Of a DNA stretch of 39,204 nucleotides, positions 6,653 through 13,955 are shown piece by piece. Source of the stretch: Neoconidiobolus thromboides FSU 785 (lineage: Eukaryota > Fungi > Entomophthoromycota); contig MU626435.1 in the NCBI GenBank assembly GCA_025603075.1, forward strand, positions 1 through 39,204. Reading direction: 5' to 3'. Within the stretch, counting starts at the first letter, position 1; every line of letters starts with the position of its first letter. The translations under genes and the position numbers were made by a program. The notes below the pieces were generated by a model. It was not told where the DNA came from. It ran no database searches and saw nothing but the letters and a program-made list of their open reading frames with translations.

Positions 6653-7448
6653 AGTCATTTTGGAATTTTAGTGCTACATGAGGATCTCCGAGTTAGTTTT
6701 AGAATCCAGTTAGAAATTCAAATTTTAAGTTTTTAAACTTGTAAGTCCTTTGTGAAATCAGGTACTCAGTAATTGGAGTCAAATAGCTATTGCCGGGTTG
6801 ACTACACTGTAAGTCTGGAGGTCTTAATTTATCTGACTAAGATAGACTTGAATTACTAAGAATAGCACATAATAGGCTACGGACCATATAAGACAAATAG
6901 AATAGACAATACTGCTGTAAGATCTATGTAAAACACTATTAAGAAAATTTAGTGGCTTTATTGAATGCGAAAGATATCGGGGAATAATCAGTTAAAAAGC
7001 CTCGAGTTACTATGTTCTAAAATCTTTTTTATACCCTGACAAGTACAAATATCAAGATGAGAAGATAACATTACCTAAGATGAAGCTAAAAATCCTCATA
7101 GCAAATTAAACTAAGAGCGCGGGATTGATCGTCTCTAAACTTGAGAATACAACAACTTAAACGGTTATTATGCTACAACCATAGAGCTGACAAAGCGATA
7201 TTCCACACCTTAATTTTAATTTTGATTTTTTTATTAAATATTATAAAAAAATCTATTTAATAGATGTTTTAATTTTTTTATAAAAGAGTAATTTCAAAGC
7301 TAACTACTCCTTTTTACACAGTTGTTTATTAAATTAGTAATATATTAATAATATAAATGTAGTATTAAAACATTTTTTTAATAGTAGATCCGTAATATTA
7401 GCTATAAAGTAGTCAACAATAAATGCTTAATGAAGTTTTATAGAAATA

Positions 7449-7552
7449 TATGGGGATGTATTCTTTTGTTTAAAAATTTTGCTAATAATTTTTTTGCTCA
7501 AATAGTGCTTAAAAATGGAAAAAATAATGAAATCAAAAAACATCCCCCCATA
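7449..7552 (+). mobile_element. MITE family A, copy 4 (inner end of the left IR arm)
   Basis: TA-TGGGGATGTATTCTTTT...AAAAAACATCCCCCCA-TA. Confidence 0.9.
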
Positions 7553-7948
7553 CGTTATATTAATAAAAAATTTGGTAGACTGAGAATCTTTGTTAAATTT
7601 AGTAAAATTCAGTTTAACTTACAATATAAACTATAATTTAATAATTTGGAACTATGTTGGGTACCTTTGCTTTTTAATAAAAAGAATTATTTTTATATAA
7701 TTCTAAGCGAAAATATAAAATACAAGATATTTAAAAATTGGATAAGAAAATGAAACTAATTTAGACATATCCCCTTATTAAATTTTTGGACTATTGAGGC
7801 AATATTTTCGAAAAATTAATAGAAGTTGTTCAAAACTAGCTATAGTCAGACTATAAAGTTATTTCAAAAATATAAGACTCTCAAGCCTAAATGAAATAGT
7901 ATGTTTTTTAAGTAAATATATGGTATCAAAAAAATCTCAGCCACTTAA

Positions 7949-8021
7949 AGCCCAACGCGGGGGTCGAACCCGCAACCTTGTGATTAAGAGTCACACGCTC
8001 TGCCGATTGAGCTAGCCAGGC
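7949..8021 (-). tRNA. tRNA-Lys-CTT: tRNA-Lys(CTT), intronless, copy 1
   Basis: GCCTGGCTAGCTCAATCGGCAGAGCGTGTGACT-CTT-AATCACAAGGTTGCGGGTTCGACCCCCGCGTTGGGC folds as a cloverleaf, with a TGTGA/TCACA anticodon stem, GTTCGA T-loop and a downstream T-run. Confidence 0.97.
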
Positions 8022-8118
8022 TTTTGTTGCTGTTATCTGATTATGAGATAAATAATATATAAATAGTAATTTTTGCCTTACTTCGATTTTAGCAGGTAAC
8101 GATTTTTAAACATGATAC

Positions 8119-8219
8119 TATGGGATATTTTTTGATTTCATTATTTTTTCCATTTTTAAGCACTATTTGAGCAAAAAAATTATTAGCAAAATTTTTAAAC
8201 AAAAGAATACATCCCCATA
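8119..8219 (-). mobile_element. MITE family A, copy 5 (inner end of the right IR arm)
   Basis: Identical to copy 4 except at the spacer-facing terminal repeat (TATGGGATAT vs TATGGGGGGATGT). Confidence 0.9.
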
Positions 8220-8429
8220 TATTTCTATAAAACTTCATTAAGCATTTATTGTTGACTACTTTATAGCTAATATTACGGATCTACTATTAAAAAAATGTTT
8301 TAATACTACATTTATATTATTAATATATTACTAATTTAATAAACAACTGTGTAAAAAGGAGTAGTTAGCTTTGAAATTACTCTTTTATAAAAAAATTAAA
8401 ACATCTATTAAATAGATTTTTTTATAATA

Positions 8430-8532
8430 TATGGAGATGTATTTTTGTATTTAAGAATTTTACTAATAATCTTTCTGCTCAAATAATGCTTAAAAATGCA
8501 AAAAGCAATGAAGCCAAAAAAACATCCCCATA
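8430..8532 (+). mobile_element. MITE family A, copy 6 (abuts the outer end of the right IR arm)
   Basis: TA-TGGAGATGTATTTTT...AAAAAAACATCCCCA-TA. Confidence 0.9.
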
Positions 8533-9606
8533 TGCTGAATCATGATTTGATATTCCAGATAAATAATCAAAATAAACTTTGCCTATTGTTTTATCACCCT
8601 TTAAATATAGAACACCAAGACCTAATACTATATAGCTTGTTTGTTATAGTGATTTAAATTTATTGAATCTGACTTTGTTTTTATATCTACTTTTATACTT
8701 ATTTAAAATTTAGAGCTATTATACAACTTATTGTTTAATTTTTTAATAGTTCTATTATACATATTTAAGTATCAATACAAAATCTATAGAATTTGTATAC
8801 CTTTTTTTCTTTATCAAAAGATTCTTCTATCTCTGCTTTGTTTCTTATTGCTGTATTTATTTTATTTTATTTTATTTTATTTATTTTCAAATAATTTTTT
8901 ATAATTATATAATAGGCGCATATATTAAGCAGGTCTGTTTCTCTTGCTGGATTTTTAAAATTGCTTAATATATATTTAAAAATATATATTAAAGCTACAA
9001 TTGATAGTAATGCTATTTATTGGTTTTGTTGTTTGTTTCTTTTAAAACATTAATTTTATGTATTAATTAAGTTTAATATTATTCATAATGATTTTAATTT
9101 TTTCTTTTATTATAAAATTCTATAAATTTGGGTTGTTATAAACAATTGTCAAGATTAATATAAATGAATTATAATATTTATATAGTGTGCTTTTCCTTAC
9201 TATATTGAAATTTTTAAAGATTCTACTTTGTTTTTATTTTAAGCTTTTTGAATTTAAACTAATCATATACACTAAGGACTTACAAATTGAAAAGCTTTGA
9301 ATTTTTAACTAAATCCTCAAACTAATTCGAACATCTCTATGTTATTAAAAATACTTAATTCCTTAATGACAGTTCTTCTATAGTATTATTATTGTCTTGT
9401 AGTAGATTGTACATTTGGTTCTTTTTGTTTTAGTTATAAGGCATTATCTTTATAATTCTAAATAAATAAATGTTTTTATGTTATGTTCTAATAGTGATCA
9501 AAAAACTTGAGCTACTCTACTAAAATCTATTAATAAATTCTAAAAATAAATTTAAAATTGAACTTTAAAACAAGTATGCATTTAAAAATAAAGCTTAAAT
9601 CCGGTT

Positions 9607-10023
9607 TTAATAATAAGGTGTAGGACAGTAAGAAGGTTTAATGGTAACAGTCTTAGTACCAGTTGAAGTTACAATTTGGGTAGAGGTAATAGTTTTAGCA
9701 GTACAAGGAGTTGGACAATCGATTGGTTTATTAGTTACTGTGATAGTTGAAGTGGAAGTAACAACCTGAGTAGAAGTAACAGTCTTAGGAGTACAAGGAG
9801 TGGGGCAATTGGTTGGTTTATTGGTAATTGTGGCAGTTGAAGTCAAAGCTACAATCGAGGTTTGAGTAACTGTCTTTGGGTTACATCCATGACCGCCGCC
9901 ATCACCACCTCCATGGCCTCCGCTATTATCGCCATCGTAGCCACCACCATAGTCATTTTGGTATGTAGCGTTAATAGCTAAGAAAAAGAGGACCATCCAG
10001 CTAAATAATAAATATTTAATCAT
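9607..10023 (-). CDS. Secreted Gly/Tyr-rich and Thr/Cys-repeat protein, 138 aa, three ~30-aa C-x-x-KT(V/I)T...CPTP modules, ends PYY
   Basis: Hydrophobic N-terminal signal peptide, GGGYDGD/GGHGG linker, three internal repeats, TATAAAAA 43 nt upstream, and a decayed paralog at 12007-12270. Confidence 0.9.
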   Translation of the reverse strand: MIKYLLFSWMVLFFLAINATYQNDYGGGYDGDNSGGHGGGDGGGHGCNPKTVTQTSIVALTSTATITNKPTNCPTPCTPKTVTSTQVVTSTSTITVTNKPIDCPTPCTAKTITSTQIVTSTGTKTVTIKPSYCPTPYY

Positions 10024-10066
10024 TTTTGTCTTTTTTGTTATAAAAGACCGAGCTCCATTACATCCC

Positions 10067-10074
10067 TTTTTATA
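10067..10074 (-). promoter_or_regulatory. TATA box of the 138-aa gene
   Basis: TATAAAAA on the minus strand upstream of ATG 10023; the equivalent site in the pseudogene copy reads TATCGAAT. Confidence 0.6.
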
Positions 10075-10496
10075 GCTGGATAAAGACTAGCTTTAAAAAA
10101 TAGATGAAAACAAAAAAGTGGGCTTTTAAAGGGATCTATTTTTAATTGAAACCAATCGCAATAAACTACCTCATTGATACATCAAAAGAATAGCAATGTT
10201 GGACTGTTTAGCTATCCATGAATTTATCTAATTTAAATTGTTAAGGTTTCTTATTTCTGAAAGTTAAATTTGTAATTTTATAATTACAGCTTTTGAGTTA
10301 AACATCACATTTAATGATATTTTTAGAATGACCTTTTGGTTACTAACAAAAAGGTAAAAACATTAAATTTAAATTAAGCTACTAAAACTTCTTACTTTAA
10401 ACCAACAGTATTCTTAAGAGATACTTTAATGTATTAAGGAACTTATTTCATTATGATATTTCACTTTATGATGAGTTTAAAAATAACTACTCTTTT

Positions 10497-10561
10497 AAAC
10501 AAAGGCTTAGGATCCGTAATGGTCCTTTTAGCTACCGCCTTCATATCTGAAGTGTATATAA
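10497..10561 (+). promoter_or_regulatory. Conserved promoter motif (10497-10520) and TATA box (10555-10561) of the 55-aa gene
   Basis: AAACAAAGGCTTAGGATCCGTAAT is matched at 12791-12814; TATATAA occurs at a similar distance upstream of all three short genes (10555, 12849, and 39162-39169 on minus). Confidence 0.6.
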
Positions 10562-10617
10562 GAGAGAATAGTAGAGGATTATAACTAAAAAAACAAAACC
10601 AAGCCATTGAAATTAAA

Positions 10618-10785
10618 ATGAGATTTTTAGCTGTTATTATATTATTTGCTGCCTCTACTTTTGCTCAAGCTTATGGCTCTGGAGATAGTTGCAAAGATAT
10701 CACTAAAGTTGTTACCAGTACTGCTACCGCTTATGTTACTAAAACCGTACAGGGAACTTGTCCCACTATCGCCCCTTACTATTAA
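10618..10785 (+). CDS. Secreted micro-protein, 55 aa: MRFLAVIILFAASTFAQAYGSGDSCKDITKVVTSTATAYVTKTVQGTCPTIAPYY (below the ORF-track cutoff)
   Basis: Own translation; AAAATG start context, signal peptide, two Cys, upstream TATA, AATAAA downstream. Two paralogs keep the same frame and motifs despite many nucleotide substitutions. Confidence 0.9.
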   Translation: MRFLAVIILFAASTFAQAYGSGDSCKDITKVVTSTATAYVTKTVQGTCPTIAPYY

Positions 10786-11465
10786 ATGCAATCCGTTTTA
10801 ATAAAATATTCATATTGACTATAGTTGTTGCTTTAAAAAATTATGAATACCTTTAGCAACTATCTTATACTTATCATAAACATTAAAATTTAAAAATCCA
10901 ATGGGGAGTTTATAAATTCATTACTCATTACTATAATTTTTAATAAATGTGTTGTGACCTATTGTATTTTGGGATTTTCCATAGCTATAACCTATTACAA
11001 TAACTAAAAATTAAGAATAATATTAACAAAATGTCAAAGTCTGTTTAGTTTTTAAACCAGCCATACAAATTAAACTTTTACGCAAGTTAAAGTAGCAAAG
11101 TTCATTTATAGTTTCAGCTGTGCCTTTAGATTTACATTACAAAATAAAGTAAGGTCATATAAAGCTTTGATATACAACTATAATATGAATTAATATAAAT
11201 ATAATGATTGATACAGTTTCGTAGCTTGATTTTTTTATCTTCAATGAAAAACATTTAATGTAAACTATTATAGTTAGCTATTTTTTCTATAAAATCAATC
11301 ATCTTTTATACAATAAAGCGTTCGGGAGCTTATATTAGATTTAAGAAAGCCATCAACTTTTCAATATAAAATCATTTGTGTTTATTTAAAATAAATTAAA
11401 GATACAAAAACAAACTATAAATATAAAACAATAGACTATTAACTTAAATAATAAATAGACATTAA

Positions 11466-11538
11466 AGCCCAACGCGGGGGTCGAACCCGCAACCTTGTGA
11501 TTAAGAGTCACACGCTCTGCCGATTGAGCTAGCCAGGC
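11466..11538 (-). tRNA. tRNA-Lys-CTT: tRNA-Lys(CTT), intronless, copy 2
   Basis: Identical to the copy at 7949-8021; ~60 nt of 5-prime flank is also similar. Confidence 0.97.
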
Positions 11539-11820
11539 TTTTATTGCTGTTATTTGGTTATGAGTTAAATAGTATATATTAATTTTTTGTCTCAACTTGG
11601 ACAATATGAATCTTTTTCAATCTTTATGATAGGAGTCAAAAATACTTAATTCATCAATGGTAATTCTTCTATAATAACATTGTCTCATAGTATGTTGTAT
11701 ATTTGGTTCTTTTTATTGTAATTATAAGGTGTTATTCTTGTACAGTTCTAAGCAAATAGAACATTTTTTATTCTATGCTCTAATAGTGATCAAAAAAACT
11801 TGGGCTACTTAACTAAAAAT

Positions 11821-11960
11821 TACTAGTGTGGATTTGATGAAATGAGCCAGTGTGAAGGCGGGGAAAATTTACTCAATTACTAATAATTGTTCGTTGTAAG
11901 TAGTGATTGGGCAAATTTTTTGCGCCTTCACTGACTTACTTCATCAAATCCACACTAGTA
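11821..11960. mobile_element. MITE family B (136 bp, 11823-11958), ~40-50 bp imperfect TIRs, TA target-site duplication, Tc1/mariner-type
   Basis: TA-CTAGTGTGGATTTGATGAAATGAGCCAGTG...CTGACTTACTTCATCAAATCCACACTAG-TA; the paralogous position near 9534 (TA-AATTC) lacks it. Confidence 0.92.
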
Positions 11961-12006
11961 AATTCCGAAAATATATTTAAATTAAACTCTAAAACAAATA
12001 AGCGTT

Positions 12007-12270
12007 TAAAATAAGGTTGACGGTAACAGTATTAATACCAATAAAAATAATAACCTTAATGGAGGTAATAGGTTTAGAATCCCAAGGCTTAGGACAGTTG
12101 ATTAAGCTTCTGATTACTGTTGCACTTTTAGTTGATGTTTACTTTGGAGTCTTTATATCTGTTTTTGGGTTACACATAATGTCACCCCGATAACCATAGC
12201 TGGTTTGATATGTAGCCTTAACAGATTAGAGAAAGATTACGATTTTATCAAATAATAATTCGATTTTTTT
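12007..12270 (-). pseudogene. Decayed paralog of the 138-aa Thr/Cys-repeat secreted protein (about two modules)
   Basis: Reads IFL*SVKATYQTSYGYRGDIMCNPKTDIKTPK*TSTKSATVIRSLINCPKP...; in-frame TAA at 12226-12228 and 12139-12141; ATG, TATA and the PYY end are lost. Confidence 0.85.
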
Positions 12271-12913
12271 ATTTTATCATACAGAAATAGACATCACTAT
12301 ACCCCATTCGATAGCCAGAAAAGGATTAGTTTTAAAATAAATATTTGATATAAATATACACCTTTAAAAAATTTATTTTTACAATTGAAAGAAACATCAA
12401 TGAAATACCTTATAGATATTTTATGCCATATAGCTATCATTTCGTTCAAATAATGTCACCATTGGTTTAATTACTAAAATTGCTTAAACTTATTTTCTAA
12501 CCAAATCTCTACTTTCTAGTTTTAACTTTTTAAAAAGCCGTCACATCCTCTTATGGCATTGATTATAATGGTTTCAATTTCTAATAAAATAAGATATAAG
12601 TGAATTTAAAATAAACTACTAAAACTTTGCTAAAAAGTGGTAATATTTTGTAAAAAAATAATGGCATCAGTGCTTTAAAAAATAAGGAAGGGTGATAGTA
12701 TTCTGGAAAGCTGCTTTAAGTGTATTGATAAAACCAATTATTTCACCTTGTCACTACTTCAAAATAAAACATAAAACTAGTCCTCGTTTCAAACAAAGGC
12801 TTAAGATCCATAATCATTTTTTTAGATAGTGACTTGGCGTTCAAAGTCTATATAAATTAGTAACTTGGAGGATTGAGGTTATAAAAAATTAAAATCGAAT
12901 CACCAAAATCAAA

Positions 12914-13081
12914 ATGAAGTGTTTAGCTATTGTTGTACTGTTTTTTGCCTCTGCTCTTTCGCAAGGCTATGATTCTGGAAATACCTGCAAAGATGTTACA
13001 AAGATTGTCACTAGTACTGCCACTGCTTATGTTACTAAAATTGTACAGGGAACTTGTGCTACTATTCCTCCTTATTATTAA
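12914..13081 (+). CDS. Secreted micro-protein, 55 aa: MKCLAIVVLFFASALSQGYDSGNTCKDVTKIVTSTATAYVTKIVQGTCATIPPYY
   Basis: Own translation; paralog of 10618-10785 with the same length, Cys spacing and PYY end; TATATAA at 12849-12855. Confidence 0.9.
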   Translation: MKCLAIVVLFFASALSQGYDSGNTCKDVTKIVTSTATAYVTKIVQGTCATIPPYY

Positions 13082-13955
13082 ATACGATTTGTTTCAATAA
13101 AATATTTATATTGATTATAGTTATTTTTTAAATATCAAAAAGAGTCATAGCTATTATTTCTATTATTTTAAAGTATTAAATTCTAAACACTAACGGAATG
13201 TATTGTAAGGCTATTGTTTATTATCAGAACTACCATTATCTTTTGATGCGTTGATACTCGTTGAAATCAAAAAAATTGGACTAGTATATTAGTAAAAAAC
13301 TGGGAAAAGATTAAACTCTCAATGTAAAGATACTTAAATTCCTTGTTTGTTTCTGAATTTTGATCTTCTGGGCTATGTAGAGTCTGAACAAAAATATATT
13401 TTTCTAAAGAGTCCTGATTCTTAATTTTATTCATTCTTCATTAAATGAAAAATAGTACAGACTAAAGAGTTTGAGTTCATCAAAGTTTGCTTAGGCCGAA
13501 GTCATAATAGCAGAAAAGCTCTATTCAGTTGATCCTCAAGCTATATTCTTTAGTCTGTTTGAATTTTTTTAATAAATCACTAGATAGTTTGGCTCTTACA
13601 ATAGACTAATCCATATATACATAAATATTATCATTAATAGACCAAAAAATTATCTTAAAATCCTTTGGTAATATTTAATTTAGCCTTAACAGTGATAAAA
13701 TTAAGTCCTAGCAAATTTTTATTTTTTCATAACAAGTATCAATTTATTAATCAATTCATAACTTTAAAAGGTTGAAACTCTGTTACTAAATTTAACTGAT
13801 AAAATGGCCAACGATTACTTTATAAAATAAAGTTATTAAAGTAGATATATTAAAAGGCATACTAAATAAAAAAATATCTGCATTGTTAAAACAAAAACTC
13901 TAAATCAAAAGCATACAATAAAAAAAGATTGACAACCACAAATTCAATTTTACTT

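Follow-up and report, generated by a model that had tools for sequence, protein, structure and literature searches.

We report a family of small secreted proteins, rich in Thr and built around Cys-bracketed modules, that is encoded on a 39.2-kb scaffold of Neoconidiobolus (Conidiobolus) thromboides FSU 785, the whole of which is referred to below as the window, and at further loci of the same genome (L001 to L004, three distinct regions, with L001 and L002 holding the same gene pair). The family unit is a divergently transcribed pair of genes, one short and one long, on a shared homologous promoter of 600-720 bp, and both partners are under purifying selection. The family is restricted to its lineage, insofar as no relatives outside this genome were found in Pfam, PDB, representative proteins or metagenomes. 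We favor, with a probability of about 0.4, the interpretation that it constitutes a two-component cell-surface or matrix glycoprotein system. The original prediction, made from the window alone, described a modular family of secreted peptides with a common Pro-Tyr-Tyr end; the two-gene system, with mucin-like tails on some of the long partners, is an aspect beyond it.

Four intact genes (138, 55, 55 and 59 aa) and one pseudogene had been predicted in the window. All four open reading frames (ORFs) are present with the predicted positions, lengths and sequences, and the pseudogene was recovered as a decayed copy of a long gene. A six-frame scan of the window with hidden Markov models (HMMs) of the short core and the long module revealed no members beyond these. 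The genes and the signals that accompany them are as follows.

9347-13132: tandem segmental duplication, period about 2,290 bp (repeat analysis)
9607-10023, minus strand: long member, 138 aa (ORF)
about 9967-10023, minus strand: its hydrophobic signal peptide
9886-9966, minus strand: its leader of Tyr, Gly, His and Asp
9799-9885, 9709-9795 and 9619-9705, minus strand: its three Cys-bracketed Thr-ladder modules (long-module HMM, E about 1e-14 per domain)
9607-9618, minus strand: its Pro-Tyr-Tyr end and stop codon
10024-10617: shared divergent promoter, 594 bp, alignable with the intergenic DNA of four further pairs (L001, L003, L004)
10064-10075, read on the minus strand: TATA element of the long gene, CTATAAAAAGGG
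10555-10562, plus strand: TATA element of the short gene, TATATAAG, conserved at three loci
10618-10785, plus strand: short member, 55 aa (ORF; short-core HMM, E 3e-17)
10800-10805, plus strand: AATAAA of the 10618 gene
about 12005-12262, minus strand: decayed long-gene copy (DNA alignment to 9590-10040; translation with stops)
12302-12314: TATA equivalent beside the decayed long gene, mutated to CTATCGAATGGGG (promoter alignment)
12849-12856, plus strand: TATA element of the 12914 gene, TATATAAA
12914-13081, plus strand: short member, 55 aa (ORF), in the second copy of the tandem unit
13096-13101, plus strand: AATAAA of the 12914 gene
38913-39092, minus strand: short member, 59 aa (ORF; HMM E 2e-16)

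At L001/L002, L003 and L004 short and long genes stand head to head, 600-720 bp apart. The pair is seen six times in all: twice in the window, where the tandem duplication accounts for the two copies, once at L001/L002, once at L003 and twice at L004. Since their promoters are homologous, the two genes must have been copied together at least six times. The element CTATAAAAAGG is common to all five intact pairs and lies about 50 nt before each intact long gene. All three short loci of the window have kept a TATA element some 63 nt ahead of the ATG, together with the context AAAATCAAAATG and, about 15 nt past the stop, an AATAAA. Any partner of the 59-aa gene would fall past the scaffold end at 39204.

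Each protein begins with Met-Lys/Arg and 12-14 hydrophobic residues, followed by A-Q-A, S-Q-G or A-Q-D. In the short partner (52-59 aa) this signal peptide is followed by a brief leader of Tyr and Gly, a single C-x22-C core and, at the C-terminus, Pro-Thr-x-x-(Pro)-Tyr-Tyr. In the product of the 10618 gene the leader reads YGSGDS and the tail PTIAPYY; the 12914 and 38913 genes likewise encode a signal sequence, a short Tyr/Gly leader and a single C-x22-C core, with Pro/Ala-Thr-Ile-x-Pro-Tyr-Tyr at the end. In the long partner the signal peptide is of a distinct type and is followed by a YYGGY leader and between one and three C-x25-C cores, joined by Cys-Pro-Thr-Pro-Cys. A 90-nt tandem repeat gives the 138-aa protein its three 30-aa units, in each of which Pro-Thr-Pro comes after a C-x25-C core, so that the protein has six Cys in C-x25-C-x3-C spacing. 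Its leader YQNDYGGGYDGDNSGGHGGGDGGGHG (9886-9966, minus strand) is rich in Gly, His and Asp, is absent from the other long members and might bind metal ions. The long genes at L001/L002, L003 and L004 share the signal peptide MKFQILIP..., a leader ...YYGGYNP and one or two C-x25-C cores, and in three of them the modules are followed by a Thr/Ser/Gly/Glu-rich repeat. Only one tailed long gene is complete (L004:11873-12451): it encodes 192 aa with two modules and a tail of about 80 aa of TSTE/TSTTG repeats, and ends in ...TPYYTSRTRTRTRTYY. In a comparison of short cores with long modules BLASTP gave no significant match, and hhalign gave a P value of 7e-5 over 15 columns; the two kinds of module thus appear only distantly alike, and are best treated as two subtypes of one design.

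The design given in the original prediction (signal peptide, leader, and one or three Cys-bracketed modules) was borne out by these sequences, but the universal Pro-Tyr-Tyr end was not. The wider family ends in (P/T)YY, the exceptions being a short member with IAF and a long member with KICY at the end. The latter is a 108-aa long-type member (L004:10001-10327) with one module and a Thr/Ser-rich tail in which (T/R)PYY is repeated, so that Pro-Tyr-Tyr is also found internally in the family.

At L001 and L003 the assembly breaks where the long genes enter (TSTTG)n repeats. The scaffolds MU626443 and MU626393 end in an identical terminal 1,452 bp (L001:8887-10338 and L002:8887-10338) that contains one short/long pair, and both break within the (TSTTG)n repeat of the long gene; L003 (3540-4289) has an N gap at the same place. 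Consequently, the long members are under-assembled, and their public models are truncated or have been given a false intron. The affected models are K502DRAFT_351140/351930 and 352916.

Purifying selection among the paralogs, as suggested by the original prediction, is supported by the ratio of nonsynonymous to synonymous substitution rates (dN/dS, or omega). For the short cores, taken from the first Cys to the end, the three window genes gave a dN/dS of 0.08-0.19 at a dS of 0.65-0.90, and the seven members available when four from other scaffolds are added gave 0.05-0.24 (pooled 0.12), with dS ranging from 0.4 to saturated. The signal peptide and leader gave 0.5-1.2 among the three and 0.40 among the seven. 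Omega was 0.10-0.55 for the long genes. Between the three modules within the 138-aa gene it was 0.15-0.42 at a mutual dS of 0.7-2.2, and the triplication in this gene is therefore old. The core values are far from 1, and the high dS excludes gene conversion or concerted evolution as the cause of core conservation. The two 55-aa genes are 77% identical in coding DNA versus 56-61% in their flanks. That these reading frames are not genes at all is ruled out by the dN/dS values in combination with the conserved TATA and poly(A) signals. As for codon bias, a proxy for expression, the G+C content at third codon positions is the same in family genes as in the other window genes, and ACT/ACC are only slightly enriched.

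The strong conservation of the short core raises the question of whether the short peptides themselves are the active products, that is, secreted bioactive peptides of 31-38 aa with one disulfide (antimicrobial, insect-directed or a cell-cell signal), with the long proteins being minor or serving another role. An omega of about 0.1 at near-saturated dS, which extends to non-Thr positions, fits a specific target. Moreover, Lys-Arg, by sequence a kexin-type site, stands directly before the first Cys in three of the seven short members (the 59-aa member, with the leader DYGYDYGYGKR, is one of them), which suggests propeptide processing. The peptides also carry a mild net positive charge (pI 8-8.8), the 12914 gene has stayed intact and lies in a well-covered RNA contig though its long neighbor has decayed, and the fungus is a broad-range insect pathogen (PMC9409958). 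However, such a role leaves unexplained the constant pairing, across one promoter, with a long partner whose modules are of the same kind. Furthermore, effector and antimicrobial families usually diversify, whereas this core hardly varies among old paralogs, and searches of Pfam and PDB revealed no likeness to a known antimicrobial or toxin family. We consider this explanation rather unlikely. A ribosomally synthesized and post-translationally modified peptide, or a kexin-processed repeat polyprotein of the repellent or dikaritin type, was ruled out by the lack of Lys-Arg between the modules of the long proteins; within the family Lys-Arg occurs once only, before the core, in the three short members.

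Every core has 7-8 Thr in one of the two alternating phases versus 0-2 in the other (hypergeometric test for each module, P 5e-4 to 3e-3), the other phase being occupied by Val, Ile, Lys, Ser, Ala and Gln. The phase runs unbroken through the whole core of 22-25 residues, and short cores have no Gly, Asn, Asp or Pro turn at mid-core. Thr, Val, Ile and Tyr give the cores a high beta propensity. The peptides are mildly basic (pI 8-9.2) and not hydrophobic, with a grand average of hydropathy (GRAVY) of -0.5 to 0.0, and the two faces differ modestly.

It could be argued that the cores are ordinary disordered O-glycosylated spacers of the mucin type, and the family one more lineage-specific set of Ser/Thr-rich secreted proteins; lineage-specific secreted families are common in fungi. 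The Ser and Thr content of 26-40%, the low prediction confidence across the mature parts and the mucin and wall-protein neighbors in the Atlas search described below are consistent with this. However, mucin spacers evolve fast and tolerate length change, whereas in this family the cores keep the same length, Cys spacing and Thr phase, and many of their non-Thr residues, with synonymous sites near saturation. In addition, only the cores show the period-2 Thr pattern; the tails of the long members, which are truly mucin-like, lack it. The spacer explanation is therefore improbable.

The original prediction held that each module is a disulfide-closed hairpin with a Thr face, and our results do not favor this. 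AlphaFold2 gave a mean predicted local distance difference test score (pLDDT) of 48 for a short member (four-sequence alignment) and 40 for the 138-aa protein (five-sequence alignment), with mature parts below 50; only the signal peptide was modeled, as a helix. The ESMFold model of the 138-aa protein in the ESM Atlas has a pLDDT of 0.45. With such shallow alignments a low pLDDT is no evidence of disorder either. Thr phase and Cys register also fit a hairpin awkwardly: if the two Cys were directly opposed across a two-residue turn, the Thr of the two strands would lie on opposite sides, and a face of Thr only would need a turn of odd length and a one-residue offset of the Cys. Judging from the sequence, intermolecular disulfides on an extended strand would be equally possible.

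Thr at alternate strand positions, as found in every core, and few disulfides are also features of the arthropod antifreeze proteins of Tenebrio, spruce budworm, Rhagium and inchworm (PMC13080227), and ice binding (antifreeze activity or inhibition of recrystallization) through a flat TxTxT array was accordingly weighed. The core pattern T-x-T-x-T-x-(V/I/Y)-x-T-x-T-(x-T-x-T) exceeds the insect rows TxT, TxTxTxT and TxTxTxTxTxT in length (PMC13080227), and the 138-aa protein offers three Thr rows. However, the known arrays need four to eight stacked strands of a folded solenoid, whereas the low-confidence AlphaFold2 model of this protein (pLDDT 40) predicts none and the family includes single-row peptides, which cannot make an array alone. 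Thr-rich secreted fungal sequence is likely to be O-mannosylated, and exposed Thr would probably be so modified in the fungal secretory pathway. Moreover, the PDB search gave no sequence match to a solved antifreeze protein, and nothing ties expression to cold. Ice binding thus seems very improbable.

The prediction that the family belongs to no named family was upheld, in that Pfam, PDB and 1.84 billion representative proteins yielded no characterized relative. In Pfam (E<=1 and E<=10) the 138-, 55-, 59-, 108- and 192-aa members gave chance hits only. The flocculin type-3 repeat PF13928, to which a loose likeness had been noted, did not match any of these members even at E<=10, and surfaces only as a low-score (0.63) feature neighbor in the ESM Atlas. 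PDB sequences gave no match to the three-module region at E<=10. A phmmer search of the module region against the 1.84 billion representative proteins returned a sole true match, from the same genome; two other matches, to an unrelated His/Leu/Pro-rich repeat protein and to a bacterial SpaA-type adhesin, were spurious. A profile of two long members matched three proteins, all of the same genome. In a word-indexed protein search the 55-aa query matched only its own mis-modeled annotation, K502DRAFT_351807, and the 138-aa query matched nothing. Two metagenome scans gave no relative, and the candidate locus L005, which encodes a bacterial Cys-rich surface protein, was rejected as it matched solely via the TSTE repeat. 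An exact look-up in a collection of 15 billion proteins found none of the three window proteins queried, the 138-aa protein included; the exact 138-aa sequence is present in the ESM Atlas. There, language-model neighbors are fungal wall glycoproteins and adhesins (Als, FIT1, TIR4, Pga38, zonadhesin) with scores of 0.6-0.82, which we regard as a lead, not a finding. Genes as short as these often go unannotated, and for the short members absence from the protein sets of other species is thus weak evidence. Long members would normally be called by annotation, and none was found in those protein sets.

Annotation of the N. thromboides genome has overlooked this conserved, multi-copy secreted family: most members are missing from public protein sets, and the few existing models are wrong at the 5' end or cut at scaffold ends. 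The 10618 gene is annotated as K502DRAFT_351807, a protein of 84 aa (window 10471-10785) that starts from an upstream ATG and is spliced into the signal peptide. The first exon of this model spans the conserved TATA element at 10555-10562, and it is the shorter reading of 55 aa, starting at 10618, that agrees with the paralogs; the exon is almost certainly wrong.

The RNA evidence consists of assembled contigs of public runs, without strand information. In the run from the source organism, a 3,052-nt contig of depth 158 is identical to 12377-13300 and includes the 12914 gene. This contig reaches over neighboring genes, and hence does not prove an mRNA of the 12914 gene. Large parts of the region have zero depth in the same run, which makes carry-over of DNA unlikely there. 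A 158-nt contig (10721-10878, depth 3) represents the 3' end of the 10618 gene. In the RNA runs of another study, an additional short paralog is covered from just ahead of its ATG to just past its stop by contigs at depth 8-20, and one contig of depth 7 has the codons for YDYGYGKRCK of the 59-aa gene. Sequence of the 138-aa gene is present in four RNA runs of that study (29-57% of sampled words) and not in the source-organism run.

The decayed long gene has no start codon, has lost its Gly-rich leader and last module, and contains many stops. A source-organism RNA contig of depth 26 joins 12004-12021 to 12071-12317, and the 49 nt that it skips, when shifted by one base, read GT..AG on the plus strand. 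There may thus be a spliced plus-strand transcript that runs antisense through the decayed gene towards the 12914 gene, a weak indication given that one side of the joint comprises 18 letters.

Two sets of observations underlie the interpretation as a two-component surface or matrix system. First, the long partners combine a signal peptide with long Thr/Ser repeats and features that resemble those of wall proteins. On these grounds they would be heavily O-mannosylated and would belong to the cell surface or the extracellular matrix (wall or spore mucilage), with the N-terminal Thr-ladder modules as docking or polymerizing units. Secondly, the short partners share a promoter region with the long ones and are conserved far above what is expected of a spacer, which suggests that they are free copies of the N-terminal module, produced alongside the long partners. 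They could be added onto the long-partner modules, or cap or cross-link them, joining by beta-strand pairing and by disulfide exchange via the Cys at both strand ends, and the terminal Tyr-Tyr would be a possible site of oxidative coupling by which short partners are fixed. A laccase-like oxidase is secreted by C. thromboides (PMC9059234), and tyrosinases of the secreted type are an indicator group in the secretomes of Zoopagomycota (PMC9391592), so that suitable oxidases for Tyr coupling exist. With a one-disulfide peptide of 31-38 aa and a modular partner, the system would be easily synthesized and testable.

Several observations weigh against this interpretation. The 138-aa member has no mucin tail. 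A glycosylphosphatidylinositol (GPI) signal and PIR (DGQ-type) repeats are, by reading, absent from every long member, which leaves the long partners without a known covalent wall anchor; their C-termini (...CPTPYY, ...RTRTRTRTYY, ...TKICY) carry no hydrophobic tail. AlphaFold2 returned no confident fold for a short member or the 138-aa protein, nor did ESMFold for the latter. The RNA contigs over the 138-aa gene have a depth of 2-3, equal to the intergenic depth in the same runs, and hence do not prove its transcription. Finally, the tight conservation of the short core, including its non-Thr residues, would equally fit a specific ligand or receptor.

The role of Tyr should be interpreted with some caution. 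It had been predicted that Tyr at both ends of the proteins would serve cross-linking, and this is doubtful for the N-terminal end: in the three short members whose leader ends in Lys-Arg directly before the first Cys, the Tyr/Gly leader would be cut off, and the leader evolves faster than the core. From its sequence, the Tyr-rich leader thus appears a poor candidate for cross-linking. Plant extensins, which are O-glycosylated rod-like wall proteins, form a network by cross-linking at their Tyr-X-Tyr motifs (PMC4275275, PMC8160292), and a leader such as DYGYDYGY and the terminal YY offer similar chemistry. Tyr cross-linking in the family is nevertheless conjecture, the proteins have neither Ser-Hyp4 motifs nor homology to extensins, and the Tyr-rich leader is probably removed in the Lys-Arg copies.

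Among fungal proteins, the Ser/Thr-rich wall glycoproteins and adhesins (PF13928, Als, TIR, FIT) resemble the family in being secreted and Thr-rich with beta-prone Thr/Val/Ile stretches. However, these are Ascomycota proteins of hundreds of residues, whereas the family unit is a Cys-bracketed core of 24-27 residues that also occurs in free peptides of 31-38 aa, and the family proteins have no GPI signal. The hallmarks of covalently anchored fungal wall proteins (GPI-anchored cell wall proteins and PIR proteins) were not found in the long-member sequences on inspection. Class I and II hydrophobins have an eight-Cys pattern, whereas the family has two Cys per module and no Pfam match.

The closest analogy in design is with the chaplins of Streptomyces, in which one-domain proteins of about 55 aa (ChpD-H) and longer multi-domain proteins (ChpA-C) are both needed, and in which each domain mostly has two conserved Cys (PMC3079736). 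Short one-module genes beside long genes of one to three modules, with two Cys per module, reproduce this arrangement; the likeness is one of design and does not imply membership. Chaplins are bacterial, sortase-anchored and very hydrophobic, their domain comprising about 40 mostly hydrophobic residues (PMC3079736), whereas the family is Thr-rich (Ser and Thr 26-40%, GRAVY -0.5 to 0.0), has no Pfam match to the chaplin domain, and has mucin-like tails and divergent gene pairs. The repellents of Ustilago maydis are small secreted peptides that form amphipathic amyloid fibrils on aerial hyphae, and Rep1 is one polyprotein processed in the secretory pathway to 11 peptides (PMC3133707). They illustrate that secreted fungal peptides of this size can be used for surface functions. 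However, the 138-aa protein lacks Lys-Arg between its modules, the short peptides have genes of their own, and no sequence likeness was found.

From these analogies it could be hypothesized that the modules stack into cross-beta fibrils and form a self-assembling layer on aerial hyphae and discharged spores. The chaplin-like combination of short one-domain and long multi-domain proteins (PMC3079736), the precedent of the repellents (PMC3133707), the high beta propensity and period-2 patterning of the cores, and the rarity of hydrophobins in this phylum, with candidates in only one of six Zoopagomycota proteomes (10.1101/2022.08.19.504535), favor this hypothesis. However, the peptides are polar, whereas chaplins are very hydrophobic (PMC3079736). 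Lys ladders disfavor in-register parallel stacking, and the probable O-mannosylation would hinder tight stacking. On balance, a layer of this kind is distinctly unlikely.

N. thromboides (formerly Conidiobolus thromboides) is an entomophthoralean with forcibly discharged conidia, two kinds of resting spores and a broad insect range (PMC9409958), and in the literature we found no surface, adhesive or coat protein of entomophthoralean spores. A bolder proposal, on which we would place little weight, is that this hydrophobin-poor, early-diverging fungus has a coat of its own, in which free Thr-ladder peptides of 31-38 aa and wall-held multi-module partners, expressed from one divergent promoter, co-assemble into the surface layer of the discharged sticky spores through strand stacking plus disulfide or Tyr coupling. 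If true, the coat would amount to a eukaryotic equivalent of the chaplins of bacteria, derived from an unrelated and unusually polar module.

The window has an average G+C content of about 25%, and its large ORFs have Pfam matches only to ordinary families, namely a BD-FAE (alpha/beta) hydrolase, an arylamine N-acetyltransferase and a PSP1-domain protein. One further feature accompanies each duplicated unit.

7948-8022 and 11465-11539: tRNA-Lys(CTT), upstream of each duplicated unit

The first of these tRNA genes is enclosed by a perfect inverted repeat of 309 bp (7238-7546 / 8122-8430). The second unit contains a small element (11817-11964) with terminal inverted repeats of 36 bp (89% complementary), which is missing from the equivalent place in the first unit (near 9530) and looks like a miniature inverted-repeat transposable element inserted after the duplication. 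For the region 9400-13300, a DNA run under another organism label contains a near-identical copy together with a second version of 12314-13018, which shows 79 differences and 21 gaps; this fits a species complex, divergent haplotypes or paralogs.

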